Below are positions 141 through 34,113 of a stretch of DNA of 64,000 nt, in pieces. Both the position numbers and the translations under genes were made by a program. Location: the NCBI RefSeq assembly GCF_964204645.1, contig NC_134030.1, positions 1,285,355 through 1,349,354 on the forward strand, written 5' to 3'. Within the stretch, counting starts at the first letter, position 1; each line of letters starts with the position of its first letter. The notes below the pieces were generated by a model. That model was not told the origin of the DNA, did not search any database, and was given only the letters and a program-made list of their open reading frames with translations. This DNA comes from Tubulanus polymorphus (Eukaryota > Animalia > Nemertea).

Positions 141-1930
141 AATCGCTGTTTTTGGGTAAGATCGCAGTTTTTAGGTAAGATCGCAGTTTTTAGGTTAGAT
201 CGCTGTTTTGAGGTTAGATCACCGTTTTTGGTTAGATTGCTGTTTTGTGTTAGATCACTTTTTGTGTTAGATCACAGTTTTTGTGTTAGATCGCTGTTTT
301 TGGGTTAGATCGCTGTTTTGTGTTAGATCGCTGTTTTAGGTTAGATCGCAGTTTTTAGGTTACATTGCAGTATTTTGGTTAGACCGCAGTTTTTTGTTAG
401 ATCGCAGTTTTTAAGTTAGATCGCTGTTTTGGGTTAGATCACAGTTTTCTGTTAGATCGCTGTTTTAGGTTAGATCGCAGTTTTTAAGTTAGATCGCTGT
501 TTTGGGTTAGATCACAGTTTTTGTGTTAGATCGCTGTTTTAGGTTAGATCGCAGTTTTTAAGTTAGATCGCAGTTTTTGTGTTAGATCGCTGTTTTAGGT
601 TAGATCGCAGTTTTTAAGTTAGATCGCTGTTTTGGGTTAGATCACAGTTTTTGTGTTAGATCGCTGTTTTTAGGTTAGATCGCAGTTTTTTAGGTTACAT
701 TGCAGTATTTGGGTTAGACCGCAGTTTTTTGTTAGATCGCAGTTTTTAAGTTAGATTGCTGTTTTGGGTTAGATCACAGCTTTTGTGTTAGATCACAGTT
801 TTTGGGTTAGACCACAGTTTTTTTGTTAGATCGCAGTTTTTAAGTTAGATCGCTGTTTTAGGTTAGATCGCAGTTTTTAAGTTAGATCGCAGTTTTTGTG
901 TTAGATCGCTGTTTTGGGTTAGATCACAGTTTTTGGGTTAGATCGCTGTTTTTGGGTTAGATCGCTGTTTTGGGTTAGATCACAGTTTTTGGGTTAGATC
1001 GCTGTTTTTGGGTTAGATCGCTGTTTTTGGGTTAAATTGCTGTTTTTGTGTTGGATCATTGTTTTTGGGTTAGATCGATGTTTTTGTGTTAGATCGCATT
1101 TTTGTGTTAGATCACTGGTTTTTTGTTAGATTGCAGTTTTTAGGTTAGATCGCTGTTTTTGAGTTAGATCGCTGTTTTGTGTTAGATCGCCGTTTTGTGT
1201 TAGATCGCCGTTTTTAGGTTAGATTGCTGTTTTTAGGTTAGATCGCTGTTTTTGAGTTAGATCGCTGTTTTGTGTTAGATCGCCGTTTTGTGTTAGATCA
1301 CAGCTTTTAGGTTAGATCGCCGTTTTTAGGTTAGATTGCTGTTTTTAGGTTAGATAGCTGTTTTTAGGTTAGATCGCTGTTTTTAGGTTATATCGCAGTT
1401 TTTGTGTTAGATCACTGTTATTGTGTTAGATAGCAGTTTTTAGGTTAGATCGCTGTTTTTGAGTTAAATCGCCTTTTTGGGTTAGATCACAGTTTTTGTG
1501 TTAGATCACAGCTTTTAGGTTAGATTGCTGTTTTTAGGTTAGATCCCTTTTTTTTCTTAGATCGCAGTATTTAGGTTAGATCGCTTTTTTTGGATTAGAT
1601 CGCTGTTTTTGGGTTAGATCGCAGTTATTGTGTTAGATCGCAGTTTTTTGTTAGATCGCTGTTTTTGGGTTAGACCGCAGTGTTTAGGTTAGATTGCAGT
1701 TTTTGGGTTAGAACACTGTTTTTCTGTTAGATCGCATTTTTTTGTTAGATCGCTGTTTTAGGTTGGATCGCTGTTTTAGGTTAGATCGCAGTTTTTTGTT
1801 AGGTCGCTGTTTTTGGGTTAGAAAGCTGTTTTTGTGTTAGATTGGTGTTTTTAGGTTAGATCGCTATTTTTGTGTAAGATCGCTGTTTTTGGGTTAGATC
1901 GCTGTTTTTGGGTTAGATCGCTGTCTTTGT
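141..1930 (+). repeat. ~20-21-bp degenerate tandem satellite (GTTAGATCGCTGTTTTTGG-like)
   Basis: Continuous TTAGATCGC(T/A)GTTTTT(G/A)GG units with higher-order sub-blocks. Confidence 0.97.
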
Positions 1931-1982
1931 GTTTTTGTCAATCATCATATCAAGATTTGCAATCCCAGTTGCCTTCAAGTTT

Positions 1983-4900
1983 CATATAGAGAATTAGTGG
2001 ATGTGGTGTCCCTGGACCCCTACATGCACCATATAGAGAATTAGTGGATGTGGTGTCCCTGGACCCCTACATGCACCATATAGAGAATTAGTGGATGTGG
2101 TGTCCCTGGACCCCTACATGTACCATATAGAGAATTAATGGATGTGGTGTCCCTGGACCCCTACACGCACCATATAGAGAATTAGTGGATGTGGTGTCCC
2201 TGGACCCCTACATGCACCATATAGAGAATTAGTGGATGTGGTGTCCCTGGACCCCTACATGCACCATATAGAGAATTAGTGGATGTGGTGTCCCTGGACC
2301 CCTACGTGCATCATATAGAGAATTAGTGGATGTGGTGCCCCTGGACCCCTACATGCACCATATAGAGAATTAGTGGATGTGGTGTCCCTGGACCCCTACA
2401 TGCACCATATAGAGAATTAGTGGATGTGGTGTCCCTGGACCCCTACATGCACCATATAGAGAATTAGTGGATGTGGTGTCCCTGGACCCCTACATGCACC
2501 ATATAGAGAATTAGTGGATGTGGTGTCCCTGGACCCCTACATGCACCATATAGAGAATTAGTGGATGTGGTGTCCCTGGACCCCTACATGCATCATATAG
2601 AGAATTAGTGGATGTGGTGTCCCTGGACCCCTACATGCACCATATAGAGAATTAGTGGTTGTGGTGTCCCTGGACCCCTACATGCATCATATAGAGAATT
2701 AGTGGATGTGGTGTCCCTGGACCCCTACATGCACCATATAGAGAATTAGTGGATGTGGTGTCCCTGGACCCCTACATGCACCATATAGAGAATTAGTGGA
2801 TGTGGTGTCCCTGGACCCCTACATGCACCATATAGAGAATTAGTGGATGTGGTGTCCCTGGACCCCTACATGCACCATATAGAGAATTAGTGGATGTGGT
2901 GTCCCTGGACCCCTACATGCACCATATAGAGAATTAGTGGATGTGGTGTCCCTGGATCCCTACATGTACCATATAGAGAATTAGTGGATGTGGTGTCCCT
3001 GGACCCCTACATGCACCATATAGAGAATTAGTGGATGTGGTGTCCCTGGACCCCTACATGCACCATATAGAGAATTAGTGGATGTGGTGTCCCTGGACCC
3101 CTACATGTACCATATAGAGAATTAGTGGATGTGGTGTCCCTGGACCCCTACATGCACCATATAGAGAATTAGTGGATGTGGTGTCCCTGGACCCCTACAT
3201 GCACCATATAGAGAATTAGTGGATGTGGTGTCCCTGGACCCCTACATGTACCATATAGAGAATTAGTGGATGTGGTGTCCCTGGACCCCTACATGCACCA
3301 TATAGAGAATTAGTGGATGTGGTGTCCCTGGACCCCTACATGCACCATATAGAGAATTAGTGGATGTGGTGTCCCTGGACCCCTACATGCACCATATAGA
3401 GAATTAGTGGATGTGGTGTCCCTGGACCCCTACATGCACCATATAGAGAATTAGTGGATGTGGTGTCCCTGGACCCCTACATGCACCATATAGAGAATTA
3501 GTGGATGTGGTGTCCCTGGACCCCTACATGCACCATATAGAGAATTAGTGGATGTGGTGTCCCTGGACCCCTACATGCACCATATAGAGAATTAGTGGAT
3601 GTGGTGTCCCTGGACCCCTACATGCACCATATAGAGAATTAGTGGATGTGGTGTCCCTGGATCCCTACATGTACCATATAGAGAATTAGTGGATGTGGTG
3701 TCCCTGGACCCCTACATGCACCATATAGAGAATTAGTGGATGTGGTGTCCCTGGACCCCTACATGCACCATATAGAGAATTAGTGGATGTGGTGTCCCTG
3801 GACCCCTACATGTACCATATAGAGAATTAGTGGATGTGGTGTCCCTGGACCCCTACATGCACCATATAGAGAATTAGTGGATGTGGTGTCCCTGGACCCC
3901 TACATGCACCATATAGAGAATTAGTGGATGTGGTGTCCCTGGACCCCTACATGTACCATATAGAGAATTAGTGGATGTGGTGTCCCTGGACCCCTACATG
4001 CACCATATAGAGAATTAGTGGATGTGGTGTCCCTGGACCCCTACATGCACCATATAGAGAATTAGTGGATGTGGTGTCCCTGGACCCCTACATGCACCAT
4101 ATAGAGAATTAGTGGATGTGGTGTCCCTGGACCCCTACATGCACCATATAGAGAATTAGTGGATGTGGTGTCCCTGGACCCCTACATGCACCATATAGAG
4201 AATTAGTGGATGTGGTGTCCCTGGACCCCTACATGCACCATATAGAGAATTAGTGGATGTGGTGTCCCTGGACCCCTACATGCACCATATAGAGAATTAG
4301 TGGATGTGGTGTCCCTGGATCCCTACATGTACCATATAGAGAATTAGTGGATGTGGTGTCCCTGGACCCCTACATGCACCATATAGAGAATTAGTGGATG
4401 TGGTGTCCCTGGACCCCTACATGCACCATATAGAGAATTAGTGGATGTGGTGTCCCTGGACCCCTACATGTACCATATAGAGAATTAGTGGATGTGGTGT
4501 CCCTGGACCCCTACATGCACCATATAGAGAATTAGTGGATGTGGTGTCCCTGGACCCCTACATGCACCATATAGAGAATTAGTGGATGTGGTGTCCCTGG
4601 ACCCCTACATGTACCATATAGAGAATTAGTGGATGTGGTGTCCCTGGACCCCTACATGCACCATATAGAGAATTAGTGGATGTGGTGTCCCTGGACCCCT
4701 ACATGCACCATATAGAGAATTAGTGGATGTGGTGTCCCTGGACCCCTACATGCACCATATAGAGAATTAGTGGATGTGGTGTCCCTGGACCCCTACATGC
4801 ACCATATAGAGAATTAGTGGATGTGGTGTCCCTGGACCCCTACATGCACCATATAGAGAATTAGTGGATGTGGTGTCCCTGGACCCCTACATGCACCATA

Positions 4901-5006
4901 TAGAGAATTAGTGGATGTGGTGTCCCTGGACCCCTACATGCACCATATAGAGAATTAGTGGATGTGGTGTCCCTGGACCCCTACATGCACCATATAGAGA
5001 ATTAGT
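1983..5006 (+). repeat. 47-bp highly homogeneous tandem satellite, ~64 copies
   Basis: CATATAGAGAATTAGTGGATGTGGTGTCCCTGGACCCCTACATGCAC, starts at 1983, 2030, 2077 (period 47). Confidence 0.98.
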
Positions 5007-5077
5007 TCACTGAACCAGAATAAGACTGACTGATATATTTTCAAATGATTTAATATTTTTACTTGTTTTTCTAGATA

Positions 5078-8000
5078 ATGCCAAAAGCAATGAAGAAAAC
5101 CCGGGGCGCGGGGCCCTCAACATCTAGCCCCTATAATAAAGTAAGTACAAATTTACTGCTTCCATGCTTATTTATTCATCCCATACTTAGTATTTTGTAC
5201 CCCTGGGTCCAGTTTCACAAAAAGGATAAACGCCTTAATCGATTTAAGATAAACTGAATTAATGAAGAAATTAAATCGATTTAAGAGTTAAACCTGTTTG
5301 TGAAACTAGGCCCTGAATTGCATCTAGAATGAAAAAAAAGAAAAAAAAATATTGAAAATAACGTTGGTGAAATATTTCTGGATCTCTCTGGATTTCTGCT
5401 CAATGCATCGTTTAGTAAAATATCGATATTCTCTAAAAGTAAAGATATAAGAATAAAAATATTGTATTGAATCGTGATTAGTTACTGTATGCGCTGCTAG
5501 TTGTTGCCCAACCCATAGCCTCATTTCTCTCCATTCTAAATTTGCATTGTTTAACATTGTCTGGTCGCTATGGAAACTATTTATTTAAGTTTCTTTGTGG
5601 TATCCATGGCAACAGTAACGTTTAGGTAGTGGCACCAATTATGGGTCCCAACGTTCCCATGGCGATACATGAGAACATTTATCCTATTTTTGACCTTCAT
5701 GACGTAAGATGGTAGTGAGTCGATGACGTCATTTTCGTCTCACCACTAATGAAAAAAAAAATGAAATGAAAAAAAAGGAAAAAATCGTTAGAATTACGTT
5801 TATGAAATTTTTCTGGATCGGCTAAATGTATTGTTCCATTAAATATCGACATTCTCTAAAATTATAGGCATCAATATCAAAATGATGATACAGCAGACTC
5901 CGCTTAACTCTGTTCTATTTGGACCATTAATTAACCGAATACCAACTTTTTAAAATTTTAGGATTTTTACTTTAAGGATCAGAAAATGTGTATGCAATTT
6001 CAACCGGGTACCGAGTAGGGTGGCCGAGTCTACTGTAGTCTGCTGCCCCCTCGAATCCATTACCTTATTATCTCTCAATTTGCATTGTTTGACCTCGTCT
6101 GGTTGCTATGGAAACTATTTAGTTATATCAGGAACGGTTTTTTCGAGGTAACCAGTGGCAACAGTTAACAGACGTGTCCATCCTAGAGATAAACTGTCTG
6201 ATTTCACAGCCACATCCGTCCTGGAGATAAACTGTTAGATAAACTCTGATTTCGCGTCTGTCCTATTTCTTGTCATTGTATGAATATGTTTTCTCTTTTA
6301 TAGGGTACAGCGCAGCAACAACAACAACAACAACAACAACAGCAACAACAACAACAAAAATTTGATATTTCTATGTCCGGAATAGACGTAAGTTATCGTA
6401 AACGCCTGTTTGAAGTCATCATTCTTGAGCTTGAAACCGAAATTTATATATATAGAATATTAAACCCTGCTTCTGCTACTGACAGGTAATGTCCGTCATA
6501 CATTACTGCATCGTCAAATCTATACCAGGGTGCACCCAGGCAGATCGTTTGCATCATCACATGCAAAGGGCTGATTATTTTGGAACCCAGTTTTTATCAG
6601 CTGGAACATTCTGCACTTTCGACCATATTGATTGATAGCCCGTTATAGACGAGTGGAGAAAAACTGAAAAACCAGTTCGGACAAACTTCGATTGATTTCA
6701 CTCACATTTACAGAAATTTGGTCCGACCCCAAAACCATTTACTTACACTATACAAATCAGATCAGGTTTTTAACATTGTCTTTGATTGTATTTTCAGTTT
6801 TTGCCGACAACGCCGCCCAGCGGTACCTCGACACCGGTAAGTGATAACTATTTTCTAATAAATCACGCTTATTTCAATTTGTAATTTGAAAATAGAGGGT
6901 AGTAGCTGTTATGTATAAATTATGCTAATTAGGAATAAATTCAAATTCGATTAAGTCTCATCATCGTAGAAGTCATATATTAATGATGCTATCTCTAAAG
7001 TTGTCATTTAAATTAAGTGTTATATTTACTACTTCATTTGCTACATGACCCAAAAACCTCTACTATATAACTACTGGTTTTGTTCTAATCTTGGAAAATT
7101 TGCTGCAAAATTTACTTATCATTTGTTAAACAGTTTTTATTGAAAACCTGAATCAGTGATACATGCATTCATGAATATCCATCTAATATTTTGTTTTATT
7201 TTATCTTTACAGGATTTATCACCGATACAGCACGTGGACGTAAGAGATTAAACATTGATCTTGAATTTTAAGTTCAAACTAATTTATTTTTTTATCTCAC
7301 TCGGGACTATAGTTATTGCGTTCACTTTGCGTCCAGTTGTCTCGGGTAGTTTTTGATTTATCGTGTTGATAATTGGTTTATATACTCAAACTCAAAATAT
7401 CGGCGCAATTGGAATTAAGATGGCGCACTTGTATGTCCATTTTTTTCCCCGGCAAAATTAGCACTTTAGCAGATTTTAAGGATCAATTCTGTTGTTATAT
7501 TACATTGAAATCAGAGTTTAATATGTATCAGTATAGAGCAGGTTTTTGCTCTAGTTATAAATAAAGTTATAAATAATCTCATGAGATGTTCTGTATATGT
7601 GTAGTGAGTTTCAATGTCTTTGGTTCCTTTTAAACCAGGGGGAGTTAAATTTGAAAATGTCAGATCGTCGAGCATTTCAGACCGCTTCCAAAGTGGGTCC
7701 CTGCACCCCTAGTTATACCGTTAATATTTTAATAATATATTGATATACCATACATTGATATCGGTCTTGTAATTGGATCAACAACCATGAGATCAAAACA
7801 CAGCAAATATGAACCTGCTGTGAATCAATAGATTTGTGATAAATGTAATGAAATTGTTATTTTTCATATTGACTTTTTGAGTTAAGGGTCTGTTGTATAA
7901 GAGTATTTGGTCTCGCGTGTCAATGTATGATATCAATCTGTTGTATTTCCTCGTTCCAATGTTTAAAAGGTGTTCGTCACCTTATATTAATAAACTACTT

Positions 8001-9357
8001 TAACCGTTAGATGGCGCCATAAGTGTGATATTTGATTTATGGGATACCCGCAAAACCAGCTATTCCACAAGATGGCGCAACGAGTAGTAGGTCGTTCGTT
8101 GTCAAAATTAGTTCATTTTCGATGAACTTTGAACTGGTTTGAAGAAATACTTTCATTCTTCTACTCTGACATCGGTTTAGTTTTCATTAATAATTGATTC
8201 ATTTAAGAGAACAATTCATTCAGATTTAATTGAAATGTACAAGAAAATCGAACGCAGACGACCAACTATTTACTAGCGACACCTGGTGGATCCTCGCCTG
8301 CCATAAGTGGAATCCTCGATTGCCACAGTAAGACTGCGGGTATCCCATTGTTTGGCGTGTGAAGTAAAGTAAAGTTAGAAAACGGATGTTTAACTTTGTT
8401 GTGAAACGAAAGCGTTTTGGAGATTTTTAAACCAATCAAATCAATATTTTGATATTACGCTTGAAACCCTTCCCACTCATATTCTACGTACTAAGTATAT
8501 ATTCTTGTTTCCGTGGAAATCATGGTGAGTGGCGCCATCTATACAGTGGAGTTAGCTTTATAAATCGAGCATGATTCGACAAGTGGCTCCATCTATTCCC
8601 TAATACTGAAGCGAGGTAACCAGCAGCGCCCTCATATACAGGAAATGAACGCCTATCAAGTTTAACAATGCACGGTGTATTGACCACAGCGACCGGTGAT
8701 AATTATATCAATGTTGATTAGCTATTGCCATAGACAGGTCCGTAGCGTTTGACTGGACCAGAACGGGGCCCCCTAACCAAAACAAATTTTGAAAACGTGC
8801 CCAGATAAATTGCCTCTGGGAGATTGATTTAACGAGGTTTTGATTAAATGAACAAATTTTAATATTTGTAAGTTTAACATTTCTGTTTTTAATTTTTCTT
8901 TGCGAGGAACTGAATTTTCGAACCCCCCTGAACCGCCTCAAGCTACGTTCCTGATATAGTGCTAGCTATACCTGAATACTTTTCTCTTGAAATTGTCTAA
9001 AAAACCAGCACCTTGAACTAATGAACGTCATAATGAAAATGTTTAAAAATTCAACCGTTAATGAATTTGACTAATATATTTTTTTTATTTTCATTTCTAG
9101 CGTCAGTTTGCCTCACAGGCAAGGTCGCCGTCGCTTAATGTAAGTATCAGTGACGCCCTCAATCTCACATGCCTCACTTCCCTCCTAATGTAACCATTTT
9201 TATGAAATTCCTCAAGAAAATATATACTAGTAATCTTAGAATACACGTTTTTGTACCCAGACCCCTTCATTCTACTGAACTACCGTGTAATAAGTGCCTG
9301 TTGTGTTCATTTTCTGTTGCATTGATTTATATATTATTTCTATTTACAGTTGTCAAA

Positions 9358-9392
<35 letters not shown>

Positions 9393-12300
9393 CACCCCTC
9401 CCGCCGGAGACGCCTCCCGACTTGCAAGCAAGAAGTAAGTTCAGTCTTCAAATACAATTTCAATGCATTCAATTTTGTGTATGGCATTAAAACGGTTAAA
9501 GTTGTGACTAGTTTTCATAACTCCGTGACGTCATATTTCCATCGAGTACCGGACCCTTTCCTATGTTTTTTGCCAATTTGGATTGAATGATCGCCAGCGG
9601 TTTTTCTATACGACCCGGCTCTGCTGTATTGCATTTAGCCATCCTTTTTCTTGGCGTTTTTTATAAGAAGGTGTTTGATTTTGTCTCTAAGGGATTTAGG
9701 AATTTAAGAGACACTTGTACTCTCTATACAGTGAGTTTGTTCTGTTTTTGTTCCCTCGTGAATTTTATTTTTGTTTGGTATAATTTGATTTATCATAATC
9801 AAATCAAATCAGTGCATATTTCTTGAATTGCGTGTAAGTTATAATGTTATCAAATATCTGTTATATTTAAACCGAATATTTAATTGTTGTATTTTGAATG
9901 CGATAATGCCGCTCCCTGCTAAAGTCCAGCGTCGTCATCGTGAGGGATGCGGTCATCTGTTCGGGCCCTGATTACGTTCTGTGTTCATCCTGTTGGGCTA
10001 CATCGGGCGTTATATGAGTTAATCCTTCCTCGACTTGCGGATTGTGGTTGGAAGATCTATGGGTTCGGGCCGATAAGTCCCGGAAATAGAAAGTACAGTT
10101 TCTGCCGATGTGCCCATTGATGTCTCTATTTCAGAACATCACAGCGGTCGCCGGCTGTACAAGCACGGTCGGCTTCCCAACTCCATTCTCTGAGGAGGAT
10201 CGCTTGTTCTCTAGTAACGGTCAGTCACCAGTCAATCAACGGTTCAGCTGGTTCAGTTTCCCAGGTATCGGCGCGCGACAGTTGGGATACCTGCACAGGA
10301 ACTCAGGTCAGGTCCGTGCTACTCCGAGCACCGGTCCGGTCCAGGCATCACCGGATACTGAACATCCTGTCCGGTAGCTTCGAGAACTGGTCCGGTCCAG
10401 GCATCACAGGGTACTGAACATCTGGTCTGGTCAGCTTCGAGAACCGGTCCAGGCATCACCGGATACTGAACATCTGGTCCGGTCAGCTTCGAGAACTGGT
10501 CCGGTCCAGGCATCACCGGGTAATAAACATCCGGTCCGGTCCGGGTGGCTTCGAGCACCGGTCTGGTCCAGGCATCACCGGGTACTGAACATCTGGTCCG
10601 GGAGCTTCGAGAACTGGTCCGGTCCAGGCATCACTGGGTACTGAACATAGAGTCCGGTCCGGTCCAGGCATCACTGGGTACTGAACATCCAGTCTGGTCC
10701 GGTCCAGGCATCACCGGGTACTGAACATCCAGTCTGGTCCGGTCCAGGCATCACCGGGTACTGAACATCCAGTCCGGTCCGGTCCAGGCATCACCGGATA
10801 CTGAACATCCGGTCCGGTAGCTTCGACAACTGGTCCGGTCCAGGCATCACCGGGTACTGAACATCCAGTCCGGTCCGGTCCAGGCATCACCGGGTACTGA
10901 ACATCCAGTCTGGTCCGGTCCAGGCATCAGTGGATACTGAACATCTGGTCCGGTAGCTTCGAGAACTGGTCCGGTCCAGGCATCACTGGGTACTGAACAT
11001 CCAGTCCGGTCCGGTCCAGGCATCACTGGGTACTGAACATCCAGTCCGGTCCGGTCCAGGCATCACCGGGTACTGAACATCCAGTCTGGTCCGGTCCAGG
11101 CATCAGTGGATACTGAACATCCTGTCCGGTCAGCTCCGTGCACCGGTCCGGTCCAGGCATCACTGGGTACTGAACATCCACTCTGGTCCGGTCCAGGCAT
11201 CACCGGGTACTGAACAGGGTTCGTCGCGGTGCTTGAAAAGCTTGAAATGGCTTGAATTTGAAAAATACTACTCAAGCGCTTGAAAACAGCTTGAAAATAG
11301 ATCGAAAGCTTGAAATAATTATTTTTGACTTGAAATAAAAAGATATGGCTTGAAATGCTTGATTATCACAAATTTTCTTCTTCGCGAATTTTTTTCGATG
11401 AAATCGCAGACAGAATATGTTCTTGAGTTGTTTCTACGCGTGCGTCATGTTTTAGGCATCAATAAAGAAATTAATTGAATTGTATTGAATCGCTATGAGG
11501 CTCTTGTGGTGAAACTCTACGGTGTCTGGAGACATGAACATACGGGGAAATTTCAGTCATGCATGTTATCGAGCATTGATGTAAAATGGCATTGAAATCC
11601 CACACCAGGAGTGAGAGCCATGTTGAAGGCACAGCGACCTAGTCAAAGTCATTGAACATTACAAATTTCGTATTAGGCCATCCAAAAATCAAGGTCTGTT
11701 TGCCGTCATCCGACCGACCCGACTTCAAAGGTACCCAGTGGAAACTTTTTTCTTGGATTCATTGAAATAAATTGTATTTTTGATACAAATGGCCGACCCA
11801 CTGCCGATGTATGAGCTATGTATGTTTGAAGTTAAGTGTGCATCATGTGAAAACATGCCTCGACTATTTACTTGAAGTTTTCCAGGAAACTGGCAGTGTT
11901 CCAATAAGCTGCCATTCATTCTAAAGCTGGTAATGTTATAGCGTGCATATATTCAATCTACTGTTTCATTTTGAACGCAGATTTCGGATGTTGTTTCCGC
12001 TAAAAGTGGTGATGATAAATTTGTTGTTTTTTTTTGCCCCAAAATTTTGCAAAAAAAATGATGCTACCTTCCTACTGACTTATCCCAAAAATTTTAGTAG
12101 GTGTAACGGCAAAACAGACAATTAATTTGGGATGGCCAAATATCCAAATCTTGATTGATATGAATATTTAAGCTAGGAAATGCTGAAAATCATTGTGATG
12201 AACAGGTTTCATCTCTAACAGAATCGTATCAACTCGGAGGTTCCACTGGAATCAAAATTTTACCTCTTTTTTAACATTTTTATACGAACCTGTTCAAAAT

Positions 12301-15300
12301 AGGCAAATTGGCTGCGACTAACGAAAATTGCTTCCAACGTGCCTTAAAAAATAGCTTGAAAATGGTATAAATCTAGCTTGAAATGGCTTGAATTTCACCT
12401 GAGCTTGAGACAATGAACCCTGCTGAACATCTGGTCCGGTCAGCTTCCAGCACCGGTCCGGTCCAGGCATCACCGGTTACTGAACATCCGGTCCGGTCAG
12501 CTTCCAGCACCGGTCCGGTCCAAGCATCACCGGTTACTGGTCCGGTCCGGGCAGCTTTGAGCACCGGTCCGGTCCAAGCATCACTGAGTACTGAACATCC
12601 AGTCCGGTCCGGTCAGCTCCGAGCACCGGTCCAGGCATCACCAGGTACTGAACATCTGGTCTGGTCCGGGCGGCCTGGCATCAATGTTTCGAATTTAAAA
12701 CATAGTTATCATGGTTCTAGGTTTGGTAGAGGGCGCTCTTCTACCAGATGCAGGAGCGAGGTCACCTTCACGGAGATCGAGATCGAGGGATTATGATTGA
12801 TTCTGTAGGAACCATCATCATTCATCAGTTCAGGTCGAGGGACCGTTTAGGAAGTTCACGTCTTTCACGTCGAGGGACCGTTTAGGAAGTTCACATCTTT
12901 CACGTCGAGGGACCGTTTAGGAAGTTCACGTCTTTCACGTCGAGGGACCGTTTAGGAAGTTCACGTCTTTCACGTCGAGGGACCGTTTAGGAAGTTCACG
13001 TCTTTCACAACGAGGGACCGTTAAGGAAGTCGTCACAATAATCAGGATTTCCGCGATTTCGAAAGTCAGATTTTAAACTTGTTATTGTCATTGTAAGCTA
13101 CCGCAGTTACAGGTAAGCCTATTCTTGATTGCCCGAGACAGGCGTGCAGATATTGTTCCCGACTTAAGTTTTTGGTTGATTTTCTTGTGACTTGTTTGTT
13201 TTAGGGGTGAGATGGATGAGCCTTATTGTTTTTTGACATATATAGGTCATCCAAGATGGCCGCCACAGCCATTACAATGTGTAAAATAGCCATGCTTGTG
13301 ACAACTCTACAATCTACAGTTTCAAACCAATTTGCCAATTACTTATTCTGTGGTTTCATAATGGTAGGAGAATGAGCCTTATTGTTTTTGACATATATAG
13401 GTCATCCAAGATGGCCGCCACAGCCATTACAATGTGTGAAATAGCCATTTTGAAGCTTGTGACAACTCTACAATCTACAGTTTCAGACCAATTTACCAAT
13501 TACTTATTCTGTGGTTTCATAATGGTAAGAGGATGAGCCTTATTGTTTTTGACATATATAGGTCATCCAAGATGGCCGCCACAGCCATTTCAATGTGTGA
13601 AATAGCCATTTTGAAGCTTGTTACCGCTCTACGGACTTAAGTTTTAAGCTTAAGACTTAAGATGGCCACCACAGTTATATCAATGTGTTAAATCTTATCC
13701 GATTTGGAGCTTGTTACTGCTCTAAGATGTAGAGGTTTAGAGGTTTATAATTTCATTCATACTTGTACTGTGGTTTATTTATGGTGGTCAGAGGATGAGA
13801 CCTATTACAATTTGCATTCTCTACTTGACTCACTGGTCAAGGGTTAATATCTAGTTTGATAAATGTGATAAGCATGTCGGTGAATCACCCCCCCCCCCCG
13901 GACTCTGATCTCAATGTCTGATGTCAATCGTCAGCAGTTTCAATGGAATGGGCTCGATTAGGTGTGGAACAAGTGGAATCCTCGATTGCCACAGTCGAAC
14001 CTAGAGTATTAAGAGCTCAATTAGGTTCTTCTTTGCGTCTCTTCTCCGGTTGGAGTGCTCCAGTTTCCACCGAATGGAGGAAGATTCGAGATGTGCAGAT
14101 TCAAGTCCACCATGCGGACTCCGGCTCCGGCTCCGGCAGCTCAAGGTTCAGCCCGAACTCACACAATGCCATCTCAAGCATCCGTACTTTCTCAAGCGGC
14201 TACTAATGCTGTTTGGAGAACAAGTGCACAGCTCCAACATTCTCGTGCCCCTTCTGGTCAGAATAATTCTAGTTCATATCGGGGAATGCTCCGAAAAGGA
14301 GCTCTTCCTCTCGGAGAAACTCAAAATGAATGCTCGGGGCCAGTGAGAGGTTGTCTATAACGAGCAGCCACCTACTGATCCGGCGTTCCCGGGTCGTATC
14401 ACGGCGGCTACTGTCTTCAATTCTGAACACCTCCCGACATGCGCCCGAAAGCAGGTCACGAGACACTAATCTCGTCAGCTCTCAAAGATCTGGCCAAAAA
14501 GAGAGCAATAGAACCAGTACGGGACGAAGCCACATCCGGCTGGTTTTCATGAATATTTATGCTCCTGAAGACCACAGGGCGTCGATGGACTGTCATTCCT
14601 CGAGCGGCACCTGGATATCCCGAGGCTTCCGATGACTAAAACAGGGAGGTAATTCAAGGTCTCCGCCGAGGTTAATGGGCGGCTTCATTGGACCTGAAAG
14701 ATGTCAGGTTCCTATTCACCCGAAATCTCATCAATTTCACAGAATGAAGTGGAAACGCCGCCAGTTCCAGTTCAGGTCTCTTCCAGTCGGCCTCAGTACA
14801 GCCCACGCCCTGGGTATTTACCAGCTTGGGTCAAGTCCAGAAGGTACACTACACTCCAGGGCTGGGTTTCATAGATATGGAAGAAAAATTATTCCAGGGA
14901 ACATTTTGAAATTTGTCAGTTATAACCATGGTTTCTCATTGTTAGTATGGTGGTTGAGGATTTATCCCTTTGGATAACTTTGATACTCAGTCTATGAAAC
15001 CGGGTCCTGGAGTATTTGTCTGTTGGTTTACCTCGACGACTGGTTACTAGTACCAAACTCGACTATAGAATGTCAGGAGGCGGTGACCGCTGTCGACCGC
15101 TGTCGTAGACTTAGTTCACCAGTTCCGCGTAAACTAAGTAAAATCTCACTTGATGCCGTCCCAACAGTTCACATCTCCGGATCAGCACGGTCTTTCCGTC
15201 CATGGCTCGAGTAGCCAAACTTCAAGAAGCGTAGTTACCACAAACGAGAGGACAGCTAGTTATCGGTGACGCCTGTGGCTAAATGCAATACCGCAGTGCC

Positions 15301-18300
15301 AGGGGTCGTATCTCTGGCTATCTACACATTCAGAGAATATTAACTAAAACCATAGGAAAGGGTCAAGCACTACTCCGAAAAAAAACTAATTTTATTTCCA
15401 AAAAATTATGATATTATATGGATTGCATGCTGTGTGGAAGAAGTTTTCAAAATTATTTAGGAGCTTATTATAATTTGAATGCATGAATTGAGAGCAATTT
15501 GAAATGTGTTGATATCCGAAAGTGTTTCCATTGACTTCACTCATTCACCTGATGAAGCTTCTATACATTAGTACCCAAAGCTTGTGTGTCAAATAAACTA
15601 GTTACACGTCCTATAAAGTACTACTTGTCTCGTTATATATTCTAAACCCCAGTTAACAATTCCAGTAAGTCAGGTTTAGGGAATAGATATTTAAACCTTG
15701 AGATGAAACCGATGTGATACAATTCCAGTAAGTCAGGTTTAGGGAATAGATATTTAAACCTTGAGATGATACCGATGTGATACAATTCCAGTAAGTCAGG
15801 TTTAGGGAATAGATATTTAAACCTTGAGATGAAACCGATGTGATACAATTCCAGTAAGTCAGGTTTAGGGAATAGATATTTAAACCTTGAGATGATACCG
15901 ATGTGATACAATTCCAGTAAGTCAGGTTTAGGGAATAGATATTTAAACCTTGAGATGAAACCGATGTGATACAATTCCAGTAAGTCAGGTTTAGGGAATA
16001 GATATTTAAACCTTGAGATGAAACCGATGTGATACAATTCCAGTAAGTCAGGTTTAGGGAATAGATATTTAAACCTTGAGATGATACCGATGTGATACAA
16101 TTCAAGTAAGTCAAGTTTAGGGAATAGATATTTAAACCTTGAGATGAAACCGATGTGATACAATTCCAGTAAGTCAGGTTTAGGGAATAGATATTTAAAC
16201 CTTGAGATGAAACCGATGTGATACAATCCCAGTAAGTCAGGTTTAGGGAATAGATATTTAAACCTTGAGATGAAACCGATGTGATACAATTCCAGTAAGT
16301 CAGGTTTAGGGAATAGATATTTAAACCTTGAGATGAAACCGATGTGATACAATTCCAGTAAGTCAGGTTTAGGGAATAGATATTTAAACCTTGAGATGAT
16401 ACCGATGTTATACAATTCCAGTAAGTCAGGTTTAGGGAATAGATATTTAAACCTTGAGATGAAACCGATGTGATACAATTCCAGTAAGTCAGGTTTAGGG
16501 AATAGATATTTAAACCTTCAGATGAAACCAATGTGATACAATTCCAGTAAGTCAAGTTTAGGGAATAGATATTTAAACCTTGAGATGAAACCGATGTGAT
16601 ACAATTCCAGTAAGTCAGGTTTAGGGAATAGATATTTAAACCTTGAGATTAAACCGATGTAATACAATTCCAGTAAGTCAGGTTTAGGGAATAGATATTT
16701 AAACCTTGAGATGAAACCGATGTGATACAATTCCAGTAAGTCAGGTTTAGGGAATAGATATTTAAACCTTGAGATGAAACCGATGTGATACAATTCCAGT
16801 AAGTCAGGTTTAGGGAATAGATATTTAAACCTTGAGATGAAACCGATGTGATACAATTCCAGTAAGTCAGGTTTAGGGAATAGATATTTAAACCTTCAGA
16901 TGAAACCGATGTGATACAATTCCAGTAAGTCAGGTTTAGGGAATAGATATTTAAACCTTGAGATGAAACCGATGTGATACAATTCCAGTAAGTCAGGTTT
17001 AGGGAATAGATATTTAAACCTTGAGATGAAACCGATGTGATACAATTCCAGTAAGTCAGGTTTAGGGAATAGATATTTAAACCTTTAGATGATACCGATG
17101 TGATACAATTCCAGTAAGTCAGGTTTAGGGAATAGATATTTAAACCTTCAGATGAAACCGATGTAATACAATTCCAGTAAGTCAGGTTTAGGGAATAGAT
17201 ATTTAAACCTTGAGGAATTTAGCAATTTTGAATGAATTAAACCAATATGAGATTTCGATCCTAAGAATATTGGAAGCTTGTGTTTAACGTTACTAAATAT
17301 TAATATTATATAAAGCTAGAAGGACACGAGGGTATCCATTTTTTTGCCCGATCGCGACGATTAAATTCGCTGGTGAATTTATACGCCCGATACGAGCGGG
17401 TACCGATCTATCTATAAATCGGCCGTCACGGTGATTTCGTCGCCCGCCGACATTAAACATGTTCGATATTTACGCCGGTGTTCGGGTCACTTGTTAATTC
17501 GCCCGTCTTGTCGGCAAGCTTAAAAAGATTTAGAAAAAACTAGAAATTCTCATTCCTGAATGAACTGGATTCATCTGGGTTCAGTTTCATGAGACACAGT
17601 TCAAACTGCTCTTGAATTTGAGTTTGTAATTAATGTATGTGATTATAATGAATTGTATTTTTGTTTTACAGCTTTGGCATTTCGGTTAAGTCGTGCGTTC
17701 CGGCGGGAGGAGTTCGTCAGAATATTTCTACCGGAGTGTAAGTAGTTTAACTATTTTCATACAATATCATTTAGTGTGACGTGTGTTACTGATTCAGGCA
17801 CGGATCCAGGAATGTTTCCAAGACGGGGTTCATAAAAATGCTGACTAAAATCTCTAATAATAGCCGGGGCCTATACGGCATATTTTTTGGCCAAACATAA
17901 GGCCTTTTTTTAATAGCATGGTTTGGTTGCTCCCAAAATTTGAAGAAACATAAAATAAAAAAGAATTAGAAAAAAAATTTTTTATTCCTGTCTGTGAAAC
18001 AAATTCAGTGAAAAACCGAGCAAAAAAGATTTTTCACCTCGGCCGAATGAGAATCCTGGATTGAACGATGAAACAATTGAAAAACGCGAGGTTCTTTTTT
18101 GATCGCAGTGTGCAGAATTCAAACTTTCCAAGAATCATTTGTTCGGACATATGTATATTGCCCTATTGACAGTTCCCTCTTCCTTCTAAAAGTGATTTTA
18201 TCTCACTGAGGGAATTTTTAAAAAATTTTCTCTGAAATGATATGGTAGCGTTTTTTTTTTTGCTTTAAAAATTTTTTGGTAGCCGATCAGCGGGGTCACG

Positions 18301-21274
18301 ACCCCTGAAACCCTCCCTGGATCCGCGCCTATGATATCTCCTCAAAATCTAATAAAAACTTTCAATGAATTAATGCTGTAATGACGATATGTAGCCATCT
18401 GTCTATTTGAATGCATTTGCAAAAAGACAAAAAGAAATAGTAGCAGAATTTTGGCTAAAAGTTTAGAATACCCAAATTCAACATTGCTTGCAGCAGACGG
18501 AATTTCCGCCATTTTGGTTAACAGGGGATTCCCCCCTCCGGTACTTCCCATGATCAATAGTGTCTATGACGCGTTGCGTACGGAATGCCATGGAATTCCC
18601 TCACATGATTTATGATAATAATGTTTACTTGCATTCTGATTGGTTAAAATCGCGTGTAGTTTGAACGTAGGCAATGTTTACATTTGTAACGTCACCGGCG
18701 AGTCGCTGACATTAACGTAGTCATTGAGTTAACATTATCTTGCACTGAATGGTGATATCAATCGCATTCATTTTATAAATATTTTGAATATGAATTTGTT
18801 TTTATATATCAACTGCGAGTAACAGTGTTACGCTATTGAGTCTTAAGAGACAGCCTTTATGGACCTTATTGGTTGTTATAACTCACAAGCTGACTGAGTT
18901 AGCATTCTGGATCCATCAGATTAGTTACTTCTAGAAAATATGTTAGTCACATTTTCTGACTATATTCTGGAAAACAGTGGAAGCTTGTATCCACCCTAGA
19001 TTAGAACCAATCAGAATAGAACCAATCAGAATACACTATTTTACAGAAAATATATTTATGACAATTGCGTAAGGTTTTAGTAAAATAGTGTTTTTTCTCG
19101 AGTAGTTGCCGAAGAAGCATAAAAATTTGATTCAATTTCATTCAGATTTAAACAAACAAATCGAATTTCATTTCATTCAGCGCAAACTTCAAATCTAATT
19201 AAAATTTTGTTCAGTATGAATAAGTTGCAAATCATTGAGAGGAAAAAATAATTAATTGTGTTACTTTACAATCACAATTGTACTGTGTTTATCAAAACAG
19301 GAGACCACAGGACCTTTGGTCCTCTAGTATTCTTTTCCTAGTTATTCCAAAAACACTAAAACAGTCCAATCAGCGATCGCTGCCAGACCAACACGATTAC
19401 ATTGAAATCAAATTTAAGTAACATCAGGCGCCCCCTGTTGGAATAATATTCATAGCCGTAGCATCGAAACCATTCGACTTGTTGTTTAATGTATTTCTCT
19501 CTATTTTTATTTTACAGTGATGAACATTTTACAAGACTGTCCGTTTGGGGACTTGGTGGGGGAATTCAAAAGAAACTTGGTTCCCGATAGGATACCACCA
19601 CCGGTTAATCCTATGTCGCCCGCTGCTGCCCCTCCCCCACGTCCATTAAATTCGCCTCAGCAGCGGCCTGTCAGACAGCCGCCCCCGGCCGCCACTCGTT
19701 CGTCAGACAGAGTCCGGGGACGGCTGTTTGAAGGAGATCTGACGGAGGTAAGAATCTTTATTTGTTTTCATATTTTATTCAGGATATCAGTTGAAGTTCA
19801 GCAAATAAATTACCAGACCTGTAAACAGAAGAGTAGTCATAAATTTCCATTTGCGGGTAAAACCCCATAGTCGAAAACCTTCGGTTATTGATCTATATCT
19901 GCTTAAGACCAATGGTTGTACACACGAGTGCGAAAACTTATCGCTCAAACTTTGATTGTATCCATGGTAACGCGTACAGTATACTATGCGTGACTTACCG
20001 TTTTCTATCACTGGAATACAATACTGTTTTTGACCATGAGTGCCATCTGCGGCGGTCATAACGGACTGACTGGTGATTGGCTGAAATGCTCGTCTACCGT
20101 GGTGACGATTATTCGGTGTTACACGTGCAGCAGACACGTCCCTGAATATCTAACATTTGATTGTTGTAACTCATCGGGAAAAATATGTTTATGAGTCGAT
20201 TTTTTGTCGAAATTTTGTTCGGCAGAAAATTGGCTGCGTACGTCAAGAAGGCGGCTGATATTTGTATCGTGTGACCCCTCGTCCCGGTAATATGCCGACC
20301 CACGTACACCTGAGACCAGTTGCATAGTCAGAGCTTAGAATTAAGACCGTTTTAAGACCAACTTAGTTCTATAGCCAATCTAATAACTTAAGACCAGTCT
20401 TTAGATTTAAGACCACTTTTGGACTTAAGTCTTGACCATGGAATCGGCCCCAGATGCTTATTCCGCTGTATTGGATGCTGACGTGCTCGTGTCTTCCAGC
20501 AATGTTGTTATTCACCAAAAATATCATGTTTTGTTCGAATAACACAATTCATCTGAGTCTGGGTTTAACGGATGACACGTTCAAACAGAACTACAAAATC
20601 AATATCAGAAGTCCTTTTATATTGAAACGGTCCCAGAAGTCCCTGTTATAATGGGTACTTTTTCAAAAAAAGTAACGAGAACTCCGATGGCTTTCCGTAT
20701 CGGTAAAAACTAACTATTTCTATGAGCGTCACTCGTAGATTTACCGAAACGCCACCTTGTGACACGATATCCTAACTACGTATAGGTGTTTTATTTGCTG
20801 AATCGCTGGTTTCTCATTCTCATTTTTTAAACTTGTGTTTAATTTTATACTAAACAAATTTTTCACTTTTTCTCTTTACAGACACGACCACCGCCAAAAA
20901 AAACTAGAACAAAAAGGAAAAGAAAAGTTGCGGTCGTCGTGGCTCCGCAGGGAGGAGGAGCAAGAGTGGTCCCGGCGGATGGTGCGGCTGACGAAGGTAA
21001 TCGGGAGGAAGGGGAGGGGATAAATAGGAAGCGGCCGAGGAGGGATGGTGGTGGGGCTGGGGATGGTGCGGGTCCTGCTCCTCCTGCTCCTCCATCCGTA
21101 TCTCGGGCGGTCACTCGTTCACTCGCCAAAAAGCTGGCGAGTGAACGAGTGGCCCGAGAGGTAGAGGTGGTGGCCCGACATACGGATGGAATGTGGGAGG
21201 AGCGGCTTCGTTCGGGGACAATTCCGGATTTGTTAACTGATTTAAAAAATATTCTTTCAGTGAAGGGATATTAG
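5078..21274 (+). CDS. Gene A: 9-exon orphan gene, 341 aa, mostly disordered, probably nuclear. Exons 5078-5140, 6304-6387, 6798-6836, 7213-7239, 9101-9139, 9350-9434, 17672-17737, 19518-19747, 20882-21274
   Basis: Every exon has a pyrimidine-rich YAG acceptor and every internal one a GTAAG(T/A) donor. Intron phases 0,0,0,0,0,1,1,0 join into a 1026-nt stop-free frame: MPKAMKKTRGAGPSTSSPYNK|GTAQ15KFDISMSGID|FLPTTPPSGTSTP|DLSPIQHVD|RQFASQARSPSLN|LSNNS10APLPPETPPDLQAR|TLAFRLSRAFRREEFVRIFLPE|LMNILQDCPFGDLVGEFKRNLVPDRIPPP...LFEGDLTE|TRPPPKKTRTKRKRK...LKNILSVKGY*. Paralogous minus-strand exons keep the same boundaries. Confidence 0.8.
5206..5312. mobile_element. PIF/Harbinger-type MITE
   Basis: TIRs GGTCCAGTTTCACAAA / TTTGTGAAACTAGGCC, flanked by CTG...CTG 3-bp TSD (5203-05, 5313-15). 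Confidence 0.7.
5891..6035. mobile_element. Tc1/mariner-type MITE
   Basis: TA|CAGCAGACTC ... GAGTCTACTG|TA: TIRs with TA TSD. Confidence 0.65.
8735..8953. mobile_element. hAT-like MITE in intron 4; partial inverted copy at ~50686-50885
   Basis: TIRs CAGGTCCGTAGC / GCTACGTTCCTG; TSD not clean. Confidence 0.55.
11215..12422. mobile_element. Non-autonomous DNA transposon, hAT5-like (5-bp TSD)
   Basis: Termini CAGGGTTC...GAACCCTG, exact TSD CTGAA at 11210-14 and 12423-27, subterminal GCTTGAAA repeats. Confidence 0.8.
11676..12137. mobile_element. MITE nested inside the hAT5-like element
   Basis: TIRs GGCCATCCAAAAAT..TCTGTTTGCCGT / ACGGCAAAACAGA..ATTTGGGATGGCC; left flank TTA. Confidence 0.65.
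12834..13031 (+). repeat. 35-bp tandem repeat, ~5.5 copies
   Basis: CGAGGGACCGTTTAGGAAGTTCACGTCTTTCACGT at 12871, 12906, 12941. Confidence 0.95.
13120..13857 (+). mobile_element. Non-autonomous Helentron/HINE-like element with ~156-160-bp internal tandem cores
   Basis: 3-4 copies of GATGAGCCTTATTGTTTTTGACATATATAGGTCATCCAAGATGGCCGCC; ends ...ATCTAGTT. Family call is by architecture only. Confidence 0.5.
14340..15330 (+). pseudogene. Decayed DIRS-type retrotransposon reverse transcriptase
   Basis: Motifs in order across frameshifts and stops: PVRGCL (cf. PVGGRL), LAKKRAIEPV..GWFS*IFMLLKTTG, G*WAASLDLKD, QVPIHP..QFQFRSLPVGLSTA, LVYLDDWL. Confidence 0.85.
14860..15006. mobile_element. Harbinger-type MITE inserted in the DIRS RT
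   Basis: CAG|GGCTGGGTTTCATAGA ... TCTATGAAACCGGGTC|CTG; separates the LPVGLS and YLDD motifs. Confidence 0.6.
15657..17213 (+). repeat. 63-bp tandem satellite, ~25 copies, in intron 6
   Basis: ACAATTCCAGTAAGTCAGGTTTAGGGAATAGATATTTAAACCTTGAGATGAAACCGATGTGAT, period 63 (15661, 15724). Confidence 0.97.
17795..18333. mobile_element. hAT-like MITE in intron 7
   Basis: TIRs CAGGCACGGATCCAGG / CCTGGATCCGCGCCT; absent from the paralogous intron near 46745. Confidence 0.7.
20313..20450. mobile_element. Harbinger-type MITE in intron 8
   Basis: Imperfect TIRs AGACCAGTTGCATAGTCA / TGACCATGGAATCGGCCC with CWG flanks. Confidence 0.5.
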
Positions 21275-21894
21275 GTGCCTTGAACGCATGAGTCGTTCAT
21301 GCGCGCCTAATATGCCTTCACTGAAAAAAAATCAACTATAACATGTACCACATATTTTTTGATTTAATATTAGTCCAATTCCACAATTATTTCGGCTTTC
21401 AATAGTGTCTTCAATTCTTTAAAGCCCAAAGCACCTTTTTGACTCAACATCCAGTATGAAGGTGGCCGGGAATCGGGCCTGTTTTCTTCCATTTTTGTAT
21501 CCCGCCCAGCATACTGGTTGTTGACTCGAAAAGGTGCTCGCTCTGGGAGCTTATCAAAGGCAGGTGATGGGAAAGGTGCCATCACACACTCTCCTTTGAT
21601 AAGTTTCCTAGAGTGTCACGGGCTTTAACGGGTTGAATTCACTATAATACCAATTTTCCAAAATCAATTTAATTTCTTTCAGGCCATTCTTTTTCCATGT
21701 TTTTCTGGTACATGTTATGGTTGATTTCCATTTTCGAAAATCCGGAATTGAAGCCGTTCGAAGTCGGGGGGATGGTGGTGGGGTTGGGTTAGTTTAGGGT
21801 TCCTCTCTGATTACCTTCTTTAGCTCATCATCCGTGCAGGTGGCGCTTGCTCTTCTAGCCGGTGTTCCCTGGGGTAAACATTTTAAATTTAAAA

Positions 21895-24410: not shown

Positions 24411-25295
24411 TGAGAAACATTCAGACATAGTAACCGTTTTACTCGTGCTTTTCAACGACACCGTCTTATCACTCTGTAGAACGGCGATCGCAGCGTGAAA
24501 TTTGTAATCGTATTTCTCCGCTGAATTTGAATATTTGATACGCGACGCGCGTGATTGAAGCTTTGTTTATGTTCGTGCTTGCCGCGATGAATTGTCATAA
24601 ATATATCCTCCGTACAGGAGGACCATGAAAAGGTTTGAAGGGATCCCTAGTTAGCGCTTGTCCAGGTTTGGCTCTGGACCCGCTTGTTCGACTAGGCATC
24701 TTGTTGGAAATTTTGTCGACTGAAACTTCCGTAACTTTCGTTTTAGACCTCGCTGCTCGAAGAGCCGTTGCTGCGTCGGTTACTGTCATGCTTCGGCACA
24801 ATTTTGAACGATTGTTGGAAACCGCCTTGTTCTTCTGCTGCAGATGTTGACTGTGTCGTACCCACAGTAAAGTAGCCATCTTAAATTCAAATAGTTTCGG
24901 ACATTTGAGGTCCTCATCAACTCCGAGTCTTCATTCAACTGCAGTTACTGCCATTTGCCAGTGTCTGATGTAGAAGTTCTGACTTGACATTTTGATTTTC
25001 AGAATTAAGACCTTTTTTCTATTAAAGAAATTAGATATTGGTTAAAAAGAAATTAGATATTGGTTAAAAAACAAGTGAATAATTGTTTGTAAGAAAAAAG
25101 AAAATCATGTTAGAAAAAAATATAGATGTAAAAAAATATAGATGTAAGAAAAAAAAAGTATATTGTAAATCGACGAGACGACAGAACCAGCATCAGCAAC
25201 AACAACATCAGAGGAAGCAGTAACCAGTTATTTATCAGCTCCATAAATTACTGAAACGAAATCCACAACTCGGAAACCAACCACACTCAACTCTA

Positions 25296-27475
25296 GAATT
25301 GTTCATACAACTGTCAACATGGAGTTCATCTCACAAGCAAATTAGGTAATTATCTTATGAAATTGTATGAATTGCCAATTTAACATTTTTGCATTTCAAG
25401 TAGGTGTAATTGAATGTTTGTCAACCTTACTCTTATAAAACTGTGTTAACCGTTGAACAGGATTCTAAGACTGTGCAGAAAACCCGTTATCGCTGCTTTG
25501 CAGCTATAATTATCTGATAAATTAGTATGGAATGCCAATTTTACATTTTTGCATTTAAGTTTAAGTGAGTTTAAAATCACGTTTCATTTGTTGTTTATTT
25601 TGTCTTTTCAGTTTTCAATTTGCCGAGATCAGTCGTCAAAAACTGTTACAACGGAAACTTAGATAACAAAGACTTGATTTGGCAAAGATTGAAGAAATCC
25701 TGCGAAAAGATTATTCATGAATTGTTCATACAACTGTCAACACGGAGTTCATCTCACAAGCAAATTAGGTAATTATCTTATGATTTTGTATGAAATGCTA
25801 ATTTTTACTCGTTAATTTTTTACAAATAAGTTGACTTTGAAATCTTTATTAATTTCTTGTTTATTTTGTTTTTTCAGTTTTCAATTTGCCGAGATCAGTC
25901 ATCAAAAACTGTTACAACGGAAACTAAGATAACAAAGACTTGATTTGGCAAAGATTGAAGAAATCCTGCGAAAAGCTTATTCAAGAATTGTTCATACAAC
26001 TGTCAACATGGAGTTCATCTCACAAGCAAATTAGGTAGTTATCTTATGATTTTGTATGAAATGCTAATTTTTACTCGTTAATTTTTTACAAATAAGTTGA
26101 CTTTGAAATCTTTATTAATTTCTTGTTTATTTTGTTTTTTCAGTTTTCAATTTGCCGAGATCAGTCATCAAAAACTGTTACAACGGAAACTAAGATAACA
26201 AAGACTTGATTTTGCAAAGATTGAAGAAATCCTGCGAAAAGCTTATTCATGAACTGTTCATACAACTGTCAACATGGAGTTCATCTCACAAGCAAATTAG
26301 GTAGTTATCTTATGATTTTGTTTGAAATGCTAATTTTTACTCGTTAATTTTTTACAAATAAGTTGACTTTGAAATCTTTATTAATTTCTTGTTTATTTTG
26401 TTTTTTCAGTTTTCAATTTGCCGAAATCAGTCATAAAAAAACTGTTACAACGGAAACTAAGATAACAAAGACTTGATTTGGCAAAGATTGAAGAAATCCT
26501 GCGAAGAGATTATTCAAGAATTGTTCATACAACTGTCAACATGGAGTTCATCTCACAAACAAATTAGGTAATTATCTTATGGTTTTGTATGAAATGCTAA
26601 TTTTACATTTTTGCATTTAAGTTTAAATGAGTTTAAAATCACGTTTCATTTGCTGTTTATTTTGTCTTTTCAGTTTTCAATTTGCCGAGATCAATCGTCA
26701 GAAAACTGTTTCAACGGAAACTAAGATAACAAAGACTTGATTTGGCAAAGATTGAAGAAATCCTGCGAAGAGATTATTCAAGAATTGTTCATACAACTGT
26801 CAACATGGAGTTCATCTCACAAACAAATTAGGTAATTATCTTATGGTTTTGTATGAAATGCTAATTTTACATTTTTGCATTTAAGTTTAAATGAGTTTAA
26901 AATCACGTTTCATTTGCTGTTTATTTTGTCTTTTCAGTTTTCAATTTGCCGAGATCAATCGTCAGAAAACTGTTTCAACGGAAACTAAGATAACAAAGAC
27001 TTGATTTGGCAAAGATTGAAGAAATCCTGAGAAGAGATTATTCATGAATCATTTAACTGTCAACATGGAGTTCATCTCACGAGCAAATTAGGTAATTATC
27101 TTATGATTTGTATGAAATGCTAATTTTTACATTTAAGTTTAAATGAGTTTAAAATCACGTTTCATTTGTTGTTTATTTTGTCTTTTCAGTTTTCAATTTG
27201 CCGAGATCAGTCGTCAGAAAACTGTTACAATGGAAACTAAGATAACAAAGACTTGATTTCGGCAAAGATTGAAGAAATCCTGAGAAGAGATTATTCATGA
27301 ATTGTTCATACAACTGTCAACATGGAGTTCATCTCACAAGCAAATTAGGTAATTATCTTATGATTTTGTATGAAATGCTAAATTTTACTCGTTATTTTTT
27401 TACTAATAAGTTGACTTTGAAATCTTTATTTATTTCTTGTTTATTTTGTCTTTTCAGTTTTGAATTTGCCGAGAT
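25296..27475 (+). repeat. ~265-bp tandem repeat (~8 units), each with an acceptor-exon-donor structure; candidate repeat-exon lncRNA
   Basis: TTTTCAG|TTTTCAATTTGCCG...CAAATTAG|GTAATT; exon-like part ~157 nt (e.g. 25612-25768) with stops in all three frames. Confidence 0.85.
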
Positions 27476-33800: not shown

Positions 33801-34113
33801 CCACAATACCCTATCCTCCCCTAACATGTCAATCACACCATGCCCTGCCCCATTCCATACCCAAGCGCCATAACACTCATTCCCTCTATGATTGAATAAG
33901 ATAGAAATGTTACAATGTTGTAGTTAGACGGATGGGATTGATTTTCTTTGCTAATGAAGATGAGAGAACAAACATTCTTCTAACTGAGGAGGAATAAGTG
34001 AACAAACTACAGCGGTGTTACACATTCAATGTTACATGTACATCAGTTATATCTCAATTAGACTGAAACAATGAGTGAAACTTCTACAGTTACAATCTGA
34101 CACAAATCAGACT
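30832..34113. repeat. Pair of ~580-bp diverged inverted repeats (30832-31410 / 33540-34113) around a 2.1-kb spacer
   Basis: CAGTCTGATTTGTGCCAGATTGTAACTGTAGAAGTTTCACTCATTGTTTCAGTCTAAT is the reverse complement of 34057-34113; similarity continues along both arms. Confidence 0.85.
32262..32640 (+). repeat. ~102-bp GC-rich, A-tailed tandem repeat x3-4
   Basis: GAAGAGTGGGGTCCGAG...CTGTCCGCCTAGCGGGTAGGCAGTGGTCTATTCCTACCTCGACTCAAAAAAA. Confidence 0.85.

Follow-up and report, generated by a model that had tools for sequence, protein, structure and literature searches.

An amplified gene of the nemertean Tubulanus polymorphus with patchwork exons, homogeneous introns and spliced joins in genomic DNA

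Amplified orphan genes are nothing new in themselves, but the locus described here raises a question of its own: how can the exons of such a gene differ sharply between copies up to their splice sites when the introns between them do not? The locus lies in a stretch of 64,000 nucleotides of Tubulanus polymorphus DNA, analysed as a whole and hereafter referred to as the window, on a 23-Mb contig of the 268-Mb genome. What is unusual in it is the sharp, splice-site-bounded mosaicism of the exons, together with spliced joins that are found in DNA.

A first-pass annotation had described an intact gene of nine exons that join into a frame of 341 amino acids. All nine coding exons, including the seven short ones of 27 to 85 nt (exons 1 to 7), were found with their splice borders (Table 1), and the joined exons make 1026 nt, an open frame of 341 amino acids and a stop codon. 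The count of nine holds for the coding exons, while the gene in total probably has at least ten exons, with a non-coding one upstream. The internal acceptors all consist of a T-rich tract ending in AG, and the donors are all GTAAG. A blind splice-site scan over positions 5141-20881 yielded 8 donors in 11 acceptor-donor pairs; it recovered all 7 predicted internal exons and, besides, one unrelated candidate. Three sister copies, of 340 to 348 codons including the stop, have open frames and identical phases, and so does an older paralog, which has 10 exons; all length changes among these copies are multiples of three. In exons 1-6, without the Gln and Ser tracts, pS is 0.12-0.48 and pN is 0.03-0.15, and for the core in exons 7-8, compared with the older paralog, dS is 1.6 and dN is 0.2. 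The gene is under purifying selection. Because frame and phases are kept in the paralogs and dN/dS against them is low (0.12-0.3), the earlier claim of an intact coding gene stands, and the nine coding exons very probably form a genuine intron-containing gene. The patchwork of the exons, the hairpins of exon 9, the non-coding exon upstream and the broken copies in head-to-head orientation, all described below, are absent from that annotation.

A splice pattern due to chance, or a dead one, in repeat-rich DNA is a very improbable basis for the model, one that the selection tests largely exclude. Such a pattern would suit the low complexity, the absence of homologs and the lack of junction-spanning RNA: over positions 5040-9700, which hold exons 1-6, no exon joints were seen in the public runs X4 and X6. 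Run X4, from 2014, is sparse and is the sole RNA-like run, its library kind not being on record; over exons 1-6 it yielded nothing but repeat fragments and a single unspliced contig, and it contains 52% of the exon-9 words. Runs X2 and X3 have intron coverage and are DNA. However, five of the five full copies examined are open in conserved phases, dN/dS is well below 1, exon 9 is open in 34 copies and intron-less joins are present in DNA. The exon 1|2, 2|3 and 5|6 joins found in the genome are indirect proof of three of the eight predicted junctions.

Table 1 Positions of the features of the gene and its surroundings in the window.
Feature	Position	Strand	Remarks
19-bp then 47-bp satellite arrays	142-5006	+	Directly before coding exon 1; probably within first intron
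Coding exon 1	5078-5140, 63 nt	+	MPKAMKK...; splice acceptor 0-3 nt before ATG
Coding exon 2	6304-6387, 84 nt	+	Poly-Gln
Coding exon 3	6798-6836, 39 nt	+	Length in sister copies 39 or 45 nt
Coding exon 4	7213-7239, 27 nt	+
Coding exon 5	9101-9139, 39 nt	+
Coding exon 6	9350-9434, 85 nt	+	Poly-Ser and PPETPP
MITE-like insert, intron 6	11215-12422, 1208 bp		8-bp terminal inverted repeat; 5-bp flanking duplication
63-bp satellite, intron 6	15656-17214
Coding exon 7	17672-17737, 66 nt	+	First half of hydrophobic core
Coding exon 8	19518-19747, 230 nt	+	Variable first 56 nt, then Pro-rich part
Coding exon 9	20882-21274, 393 nt	+	Two NLS-like clusters and C-terminal region
RNA hairpin in exon 9 coding sequence	21101-21159	+	25-bp stem; encodes VTRS stretch
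W-x-x-R-L-R-S-G motif	21194-21217	+	Only a lead: similar to the acidic-patch anchors of LANA and SSX
Second long RNA hairpin	21255-21326	+	Across stop codon
Inverted, scrambled, broken module	46364-54270	-	Exon cassettes with short intron flanks; head-to-head with next copy
Cassette with exons 5 and 6 fused exactly	50981-51095, join 51054	-	Intron 5 missing
Cassette with exons 1 and 2 fused exactly	52080-52226, join 52164	-	Intron 1 missing
Probable non-coding first exon of next copy	60108-60219, donor at 60220	+	87% identity in older paralog

Coding exon 1 is preceded by an acceptor, and upstream of the satellites there is a donor-ended block, conserved in the sister copies and, at 87%, in the older paralog, which makes a non-coding first exon probable. 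For the gene studied here, its probable place is outside the window, about 480 nt upstream of the first position. The stretch 60050-60220, before the corresponding exon of the next copy, is promoter-like and has CCAAT-box, octamer-like and ETS-like words; further promoter-like copies are found near inverted modules at 15.154 Mb on C8 and 1.051 Mb on C6. The order of 19-bp and 47-bp satellites recurs at 60842-64000. Intron 6 had been described as 8.2 kb long and filled with transposable elements. Its length is 8237 nt, as claimed, but it consists mostly of tandem-repeat arrays and one MITE-like insert of 1.2 kb, and the segments of it that were tested revealed no TE-coding domain. The site of the insert corresponds to an alignment gap in two sister copies. 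Other repeats of the window include a DNA-transposon-like insert of about 2 kb (57745-59719), with terminal inverted repeats of 161 bp, which lies upstream of the next gene copy and is polymorphic, two other unit copies lacking it. Two tandem arrays of units of about 266 bp occupy 25292-27475 and 28021-28997; the first resembles repeated exon-intron cassettes, with an acceptor and a donor in each unit, and has no Rfam match. There is also a 600-bp inverted repeat pair (30812-31406 and 33543-34134), 82% identical and separated by about 2.1 kb, and, just past the inverted module, an ORF of 172 amino acids on the reverse strand (45364-45882) with no Pfam match.

The protein contains the Q15 and S10 tracts and the PKKTRTKRKRK and RKRPRR clusters in the form first described, and its many S/T-P sites were counted as eight. 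Pro, Arg and Ser are abundant in it, Lys and Arg number 51 against 33 Asp and Glu, and hydrophobic stretches occur only at residues 113-160 and 283-341. The product would be mostly disordered and basic, with a small helical core encoded by exons 7-8, and would be nuclear, as its motifs by themselves suggest. A single-sequence model of the C-terminal 72 residues has four helices, at a low confidence (pLDDT 59). Homology searches were performed exon by exon, the core being queried as two separate exons, 7 and 8. At this level there was nothing in Pfam at curated cut-offs, and no relatives were found in two large protein collections or in the ESM Atlas, PDB sequences, Foldseek and viral contigs. 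Weak Pfam matches to DUF6508 (E 0.003) and LisH (E 0.14), below the curated cut-off, were rejected, as were two representative matches in the exon-wise searches that consist of repetitive Pro-rich sequence. Exons 8 and 9 thereby had no acceptable match in any of these collections. Provisionally, the gene appears to be lineage-specific, with relatives only within this genome by these exon-wise searches.

A lead to function comes from the motif W-x-x-R-L-R-S-G near the C-terminus. The pentapeptide RLRSG is common to this protein and to residues 1-23 of KSHV LANA (PMC5426901). In SSX, a Trp lies three residues before RLR (W164, R167), a spacing that is matched here and that SSX needs for acidic-patch binding (PMC7714695). 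Unlike in LANA and SSX, acidic residues precede the motif in our protein, and it is not conserved outside this family. The RLR(S) arginine-anchor motif gave a shuffle P of about 0.0005-0.001, for a motif chosen post hoc, and W-x-x-RLRSG falls in nucleotide-constrained sequence. Pfam returned no SSXRD match at E up to 10. We consider it reasonably likely that the protein is a chromatin binder, perhaps tethered to the nucleosome by its C-terminal region; that the C-terminal motif uses the acidic patch is doubtful. A chromatin-associated role in the germline or embryo may be proposed from the NLS-like clusters and the amplification.

The gene had also been taken to be carried in an amplified unit. 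This is borne out by about 29 copies with identities of 97-100%, in arrays of about 33 kb per unit, besides which there are older paralogs and a distant subfamily. Exon 9 is open at 34 places, 18 on C6, 10 on C3 and 6 on C8. The C6 copies are mostly 30-36 kb apart and 97-100% identical, and the amplified copies sit near chromosome ends. The unit in the window, delimited by an exact 141-nt repeat at 1-141 and 60701-60841, is longer than most, 60.7 kb vs about 33 kb; long units carry a large scrambled module every 2-4 copies. The distant subfamily comprises nine copies on C8, C9 and C11, which have kept exon 8 and also, at 44-45% identity, the C-terminal half of exon 9; the whole subfamily, like most copies, was compared by position and identity alone. 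Most of its members (on C9, on C11 and at 13.96 Mb on C8) have an inverted partial match to exon 8 about 7 kb downstream. TSPY and the cancer-testis arrays are ampliconic germline families. Primate X-linked ampliconic genes are an example of the same type (PMC13616518). Like them, this family has many tandem copies of at least 97% identity, each unit measuring tens of kb, is apparently lineage-specific and encodes a protein that is predicted to be disordered and basic. It has no sequence relation to them, however, and the splice-site-bounded exon patchwork is peculiar to it.

In exons 1-8, short variant patches that end at the splice sites form a mosaic, while the introns are homogeneous; between copies, the difference is 5-40 times higher in these exons than in introns, and the patches are largely synonymous. 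Compared with the copy at 0.66 Mb on C6, the window differs at 12 of 63 positions in exon 1 and at 6 of 39 in exon 3, but at only 12 of 2396 in the flanking introns. Compared with the copy at 15.61 Mb on C8, 15 of the 39 positions of exon 5 differ between near-identical flanks, and the edges of the divergent exons are sharp (72/216 inside the exons vs 6/480 in the first 40 intron nucleotides). Eleven copies with near-identical flanks have ten haplotypes of exon 1, in which at least four recombination points fall within 63 nt and the third-position diversity is 0.24, vs 0.011-0.015 in the flanks. In exon 8, 12 haplotypes of the first 56 nt were distinguished among 20 copies. In DNA of a second sample, three of the seven differences of a 1048-nt contig fall in the 39-nt exon 5. 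Silent exon differences were found at 44 of 249 sites located within 40 nt of an amino-acid change and at none of 255 sites beyond, from which it follows that the variation consists of short patches.

Exon 9, which is nearly invariant between copies and the least variable exon, is exempt from the patchwork, probably because its RNA hairpins are constrained. The hairpin region of this exon has a z of -9 and no Rfam matches, and RNA structure may partly explain the invariance of the protein that exon 9 encodes.

Most array units contain an inverted broken piece of the gene, and in the window this is a scrambled module (Table 1). Exact exon-exon joins are present in such genomic DNA: beyond those listed for the window, the 1|2 join was found six more times and the 5|6 join two more times. 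In one C6 module, the first 17 nt of exon 3 overwrite the donor of exon 2, and the sequence returns to intron 2 through a 7-nt microhomology. This patch was seen at 1 of 40 scored places, and sister modules retain the normal donor. A DNA-level template switch is possible in this case because the last codon of exon 2 is GAG, vs GAC in the other copies read, and because the exon 3 present in the same module, at a distance of 400 nt, matches the patch. Two other loci (L012 and L019) consist of compact 2.7-kb tandem units, which are separated by the 47-bp satellite and comprise exon 1, fused exons 1-2, a doubled exon 3, a broken exon 4 and exon 8.

We tentatively propose, at a likelihood somewhat short of even, that the exon patchwork is produced by micro-conversion templated by RNA or cDNA. 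Ordinary array turnover would homogenise whole units, and short patches, of less than about 40 nt, would then enter the exons from spliced RNA or from cDNA made of it, the templates being other family members or the head-to-head broken modules. The patches would then be filtered by selection on the protein, so that those retained would be largely synonymous or conservative, and a tract that crosses a junction would delete an intron or a donor, as is seen in the broken modules. The exact 1|2 and 5|6 joins and the 2|3 patch over a donor count for such templating, and the shortness of the silent patches argues against a blanket silent recoding. Two reports on mRNA-mediated (reverse-transcriptase) intron loss (PMC3652778, PMC4683709) describe the same exact intron-less joins beside retained introns; the short-patch rewriting of exon interiors in intact genes is, relative to these, our proposal. 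Several points count against it: no spliced read was found, the 2|3 patch may be due to a template switch in DNA, the clustering of silent differences at amino-acid changes also fits selection of protein variants, and the differences at the first and last bases of the 27-nt exon are hard to obtain by homologous recombination with cDNA. No donor gene was found, and the window ORFs and the tested segments of the unit yielded no reverse transcriptase. A stronger form of the proposal, a heritable, RNA-templated cassette-conversion system in which intact genes are routinely diversified by short patches of spliced RNA and the module transcripts serve as a variant library, is unlikely.

The short-patch pattern fits RNA-templated patching and also islands preserved by selection. 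In the latter case, which is possible but less probable, DNA conversion with very short tracts would erase intron differences again and again, and old amino-acid variants would be maintained by selection; silent differences would hitch-hike beside these variants, and the exact intron losses would be a separate, ordinary process. This has a precedent in the L/M opsins of the gibbon, and in primate L/M opsins the exons, silent sites included, diverge more than introns between paralogs (PMC3213168). The same excess of exon divergence is seen here, and the confinement of silent differences to 40 nt around an amino-acid change is as this explanation would have it. An array copy (L008:1140-1540) is compatible with it as well: its intron 7 is short and of the module type, its exon 7 is a variant also present in a copy on another chromosome, and either DNA exchange or a retained old state would account for this. 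However, linked intron sites are not retained as linked silent sites are: within 40 nt of an amino-acid change, intron sites differ at 5 of 301 positions vs about 34 expected, where the expectation assumes that linkage preserves intron sites like silent exon sites and takes its baseline from one older paralog, and in another comparison at 2 of 90 vs 12. This deficit favours a spliced template over homogenisation of the opsin type. Moreover, 9 of the 12 variable codons of exon 1 are purely silent, and the roughly 30 copies show many mosaic haplotypes, unlike the two selected classes of the opsins. The opsins differ also in that here the adjacent intron has no residual divergence and spliced joins occur in DNA.

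An arms race with silencing RNA, of the Dox/hpRNA or Stellate-like type, is unlikely. According to it, inverted copies and hairpins would make small RNAs against the mRNA, nucleotide changes in the exons would be selected for escape from them, and the gene would be a selfish germline factor. Selection at the mRNA level would end precisely at splice sites. Most array copies are followed, about 10 kb downstream, by an inverted broken copy of exon 9, and inverted partial copies likewise accompany the distant subfamily. The Drosophila Dox/hpRNA system likewise involves recent amplification beside satellites, a basic chromatin-like protein and partner loci built of inverted gene pieces (10.1101/2021.08.05.454923), although here these loci lie in cis in each unit. 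No protamine-derived domain, as known for Dox, was found by Pfam in exons 1, 2 and 6-9. Against the arms race, silent sites distant from amino-acid changes never differ, exon 9, the commonest in the inverted copies, is the least variable one, and the promoter/exon-0-like copy in the modules is oriented in the sense of the exons. A diversity-generating retroelement was rejected, as no RT-like ORF is present among the window ORFs and tested segments and the changes, predominantly silent, include all types.

If RNA-templated patching is true, this family would be an instance in nature of germline genes being routinely rewritten by RNA. If homogenisation of introns or escape from small RNA accounts for the pattern, it would still clearly exemplify strong selection on a nuclear protein in a little-studied phylum.
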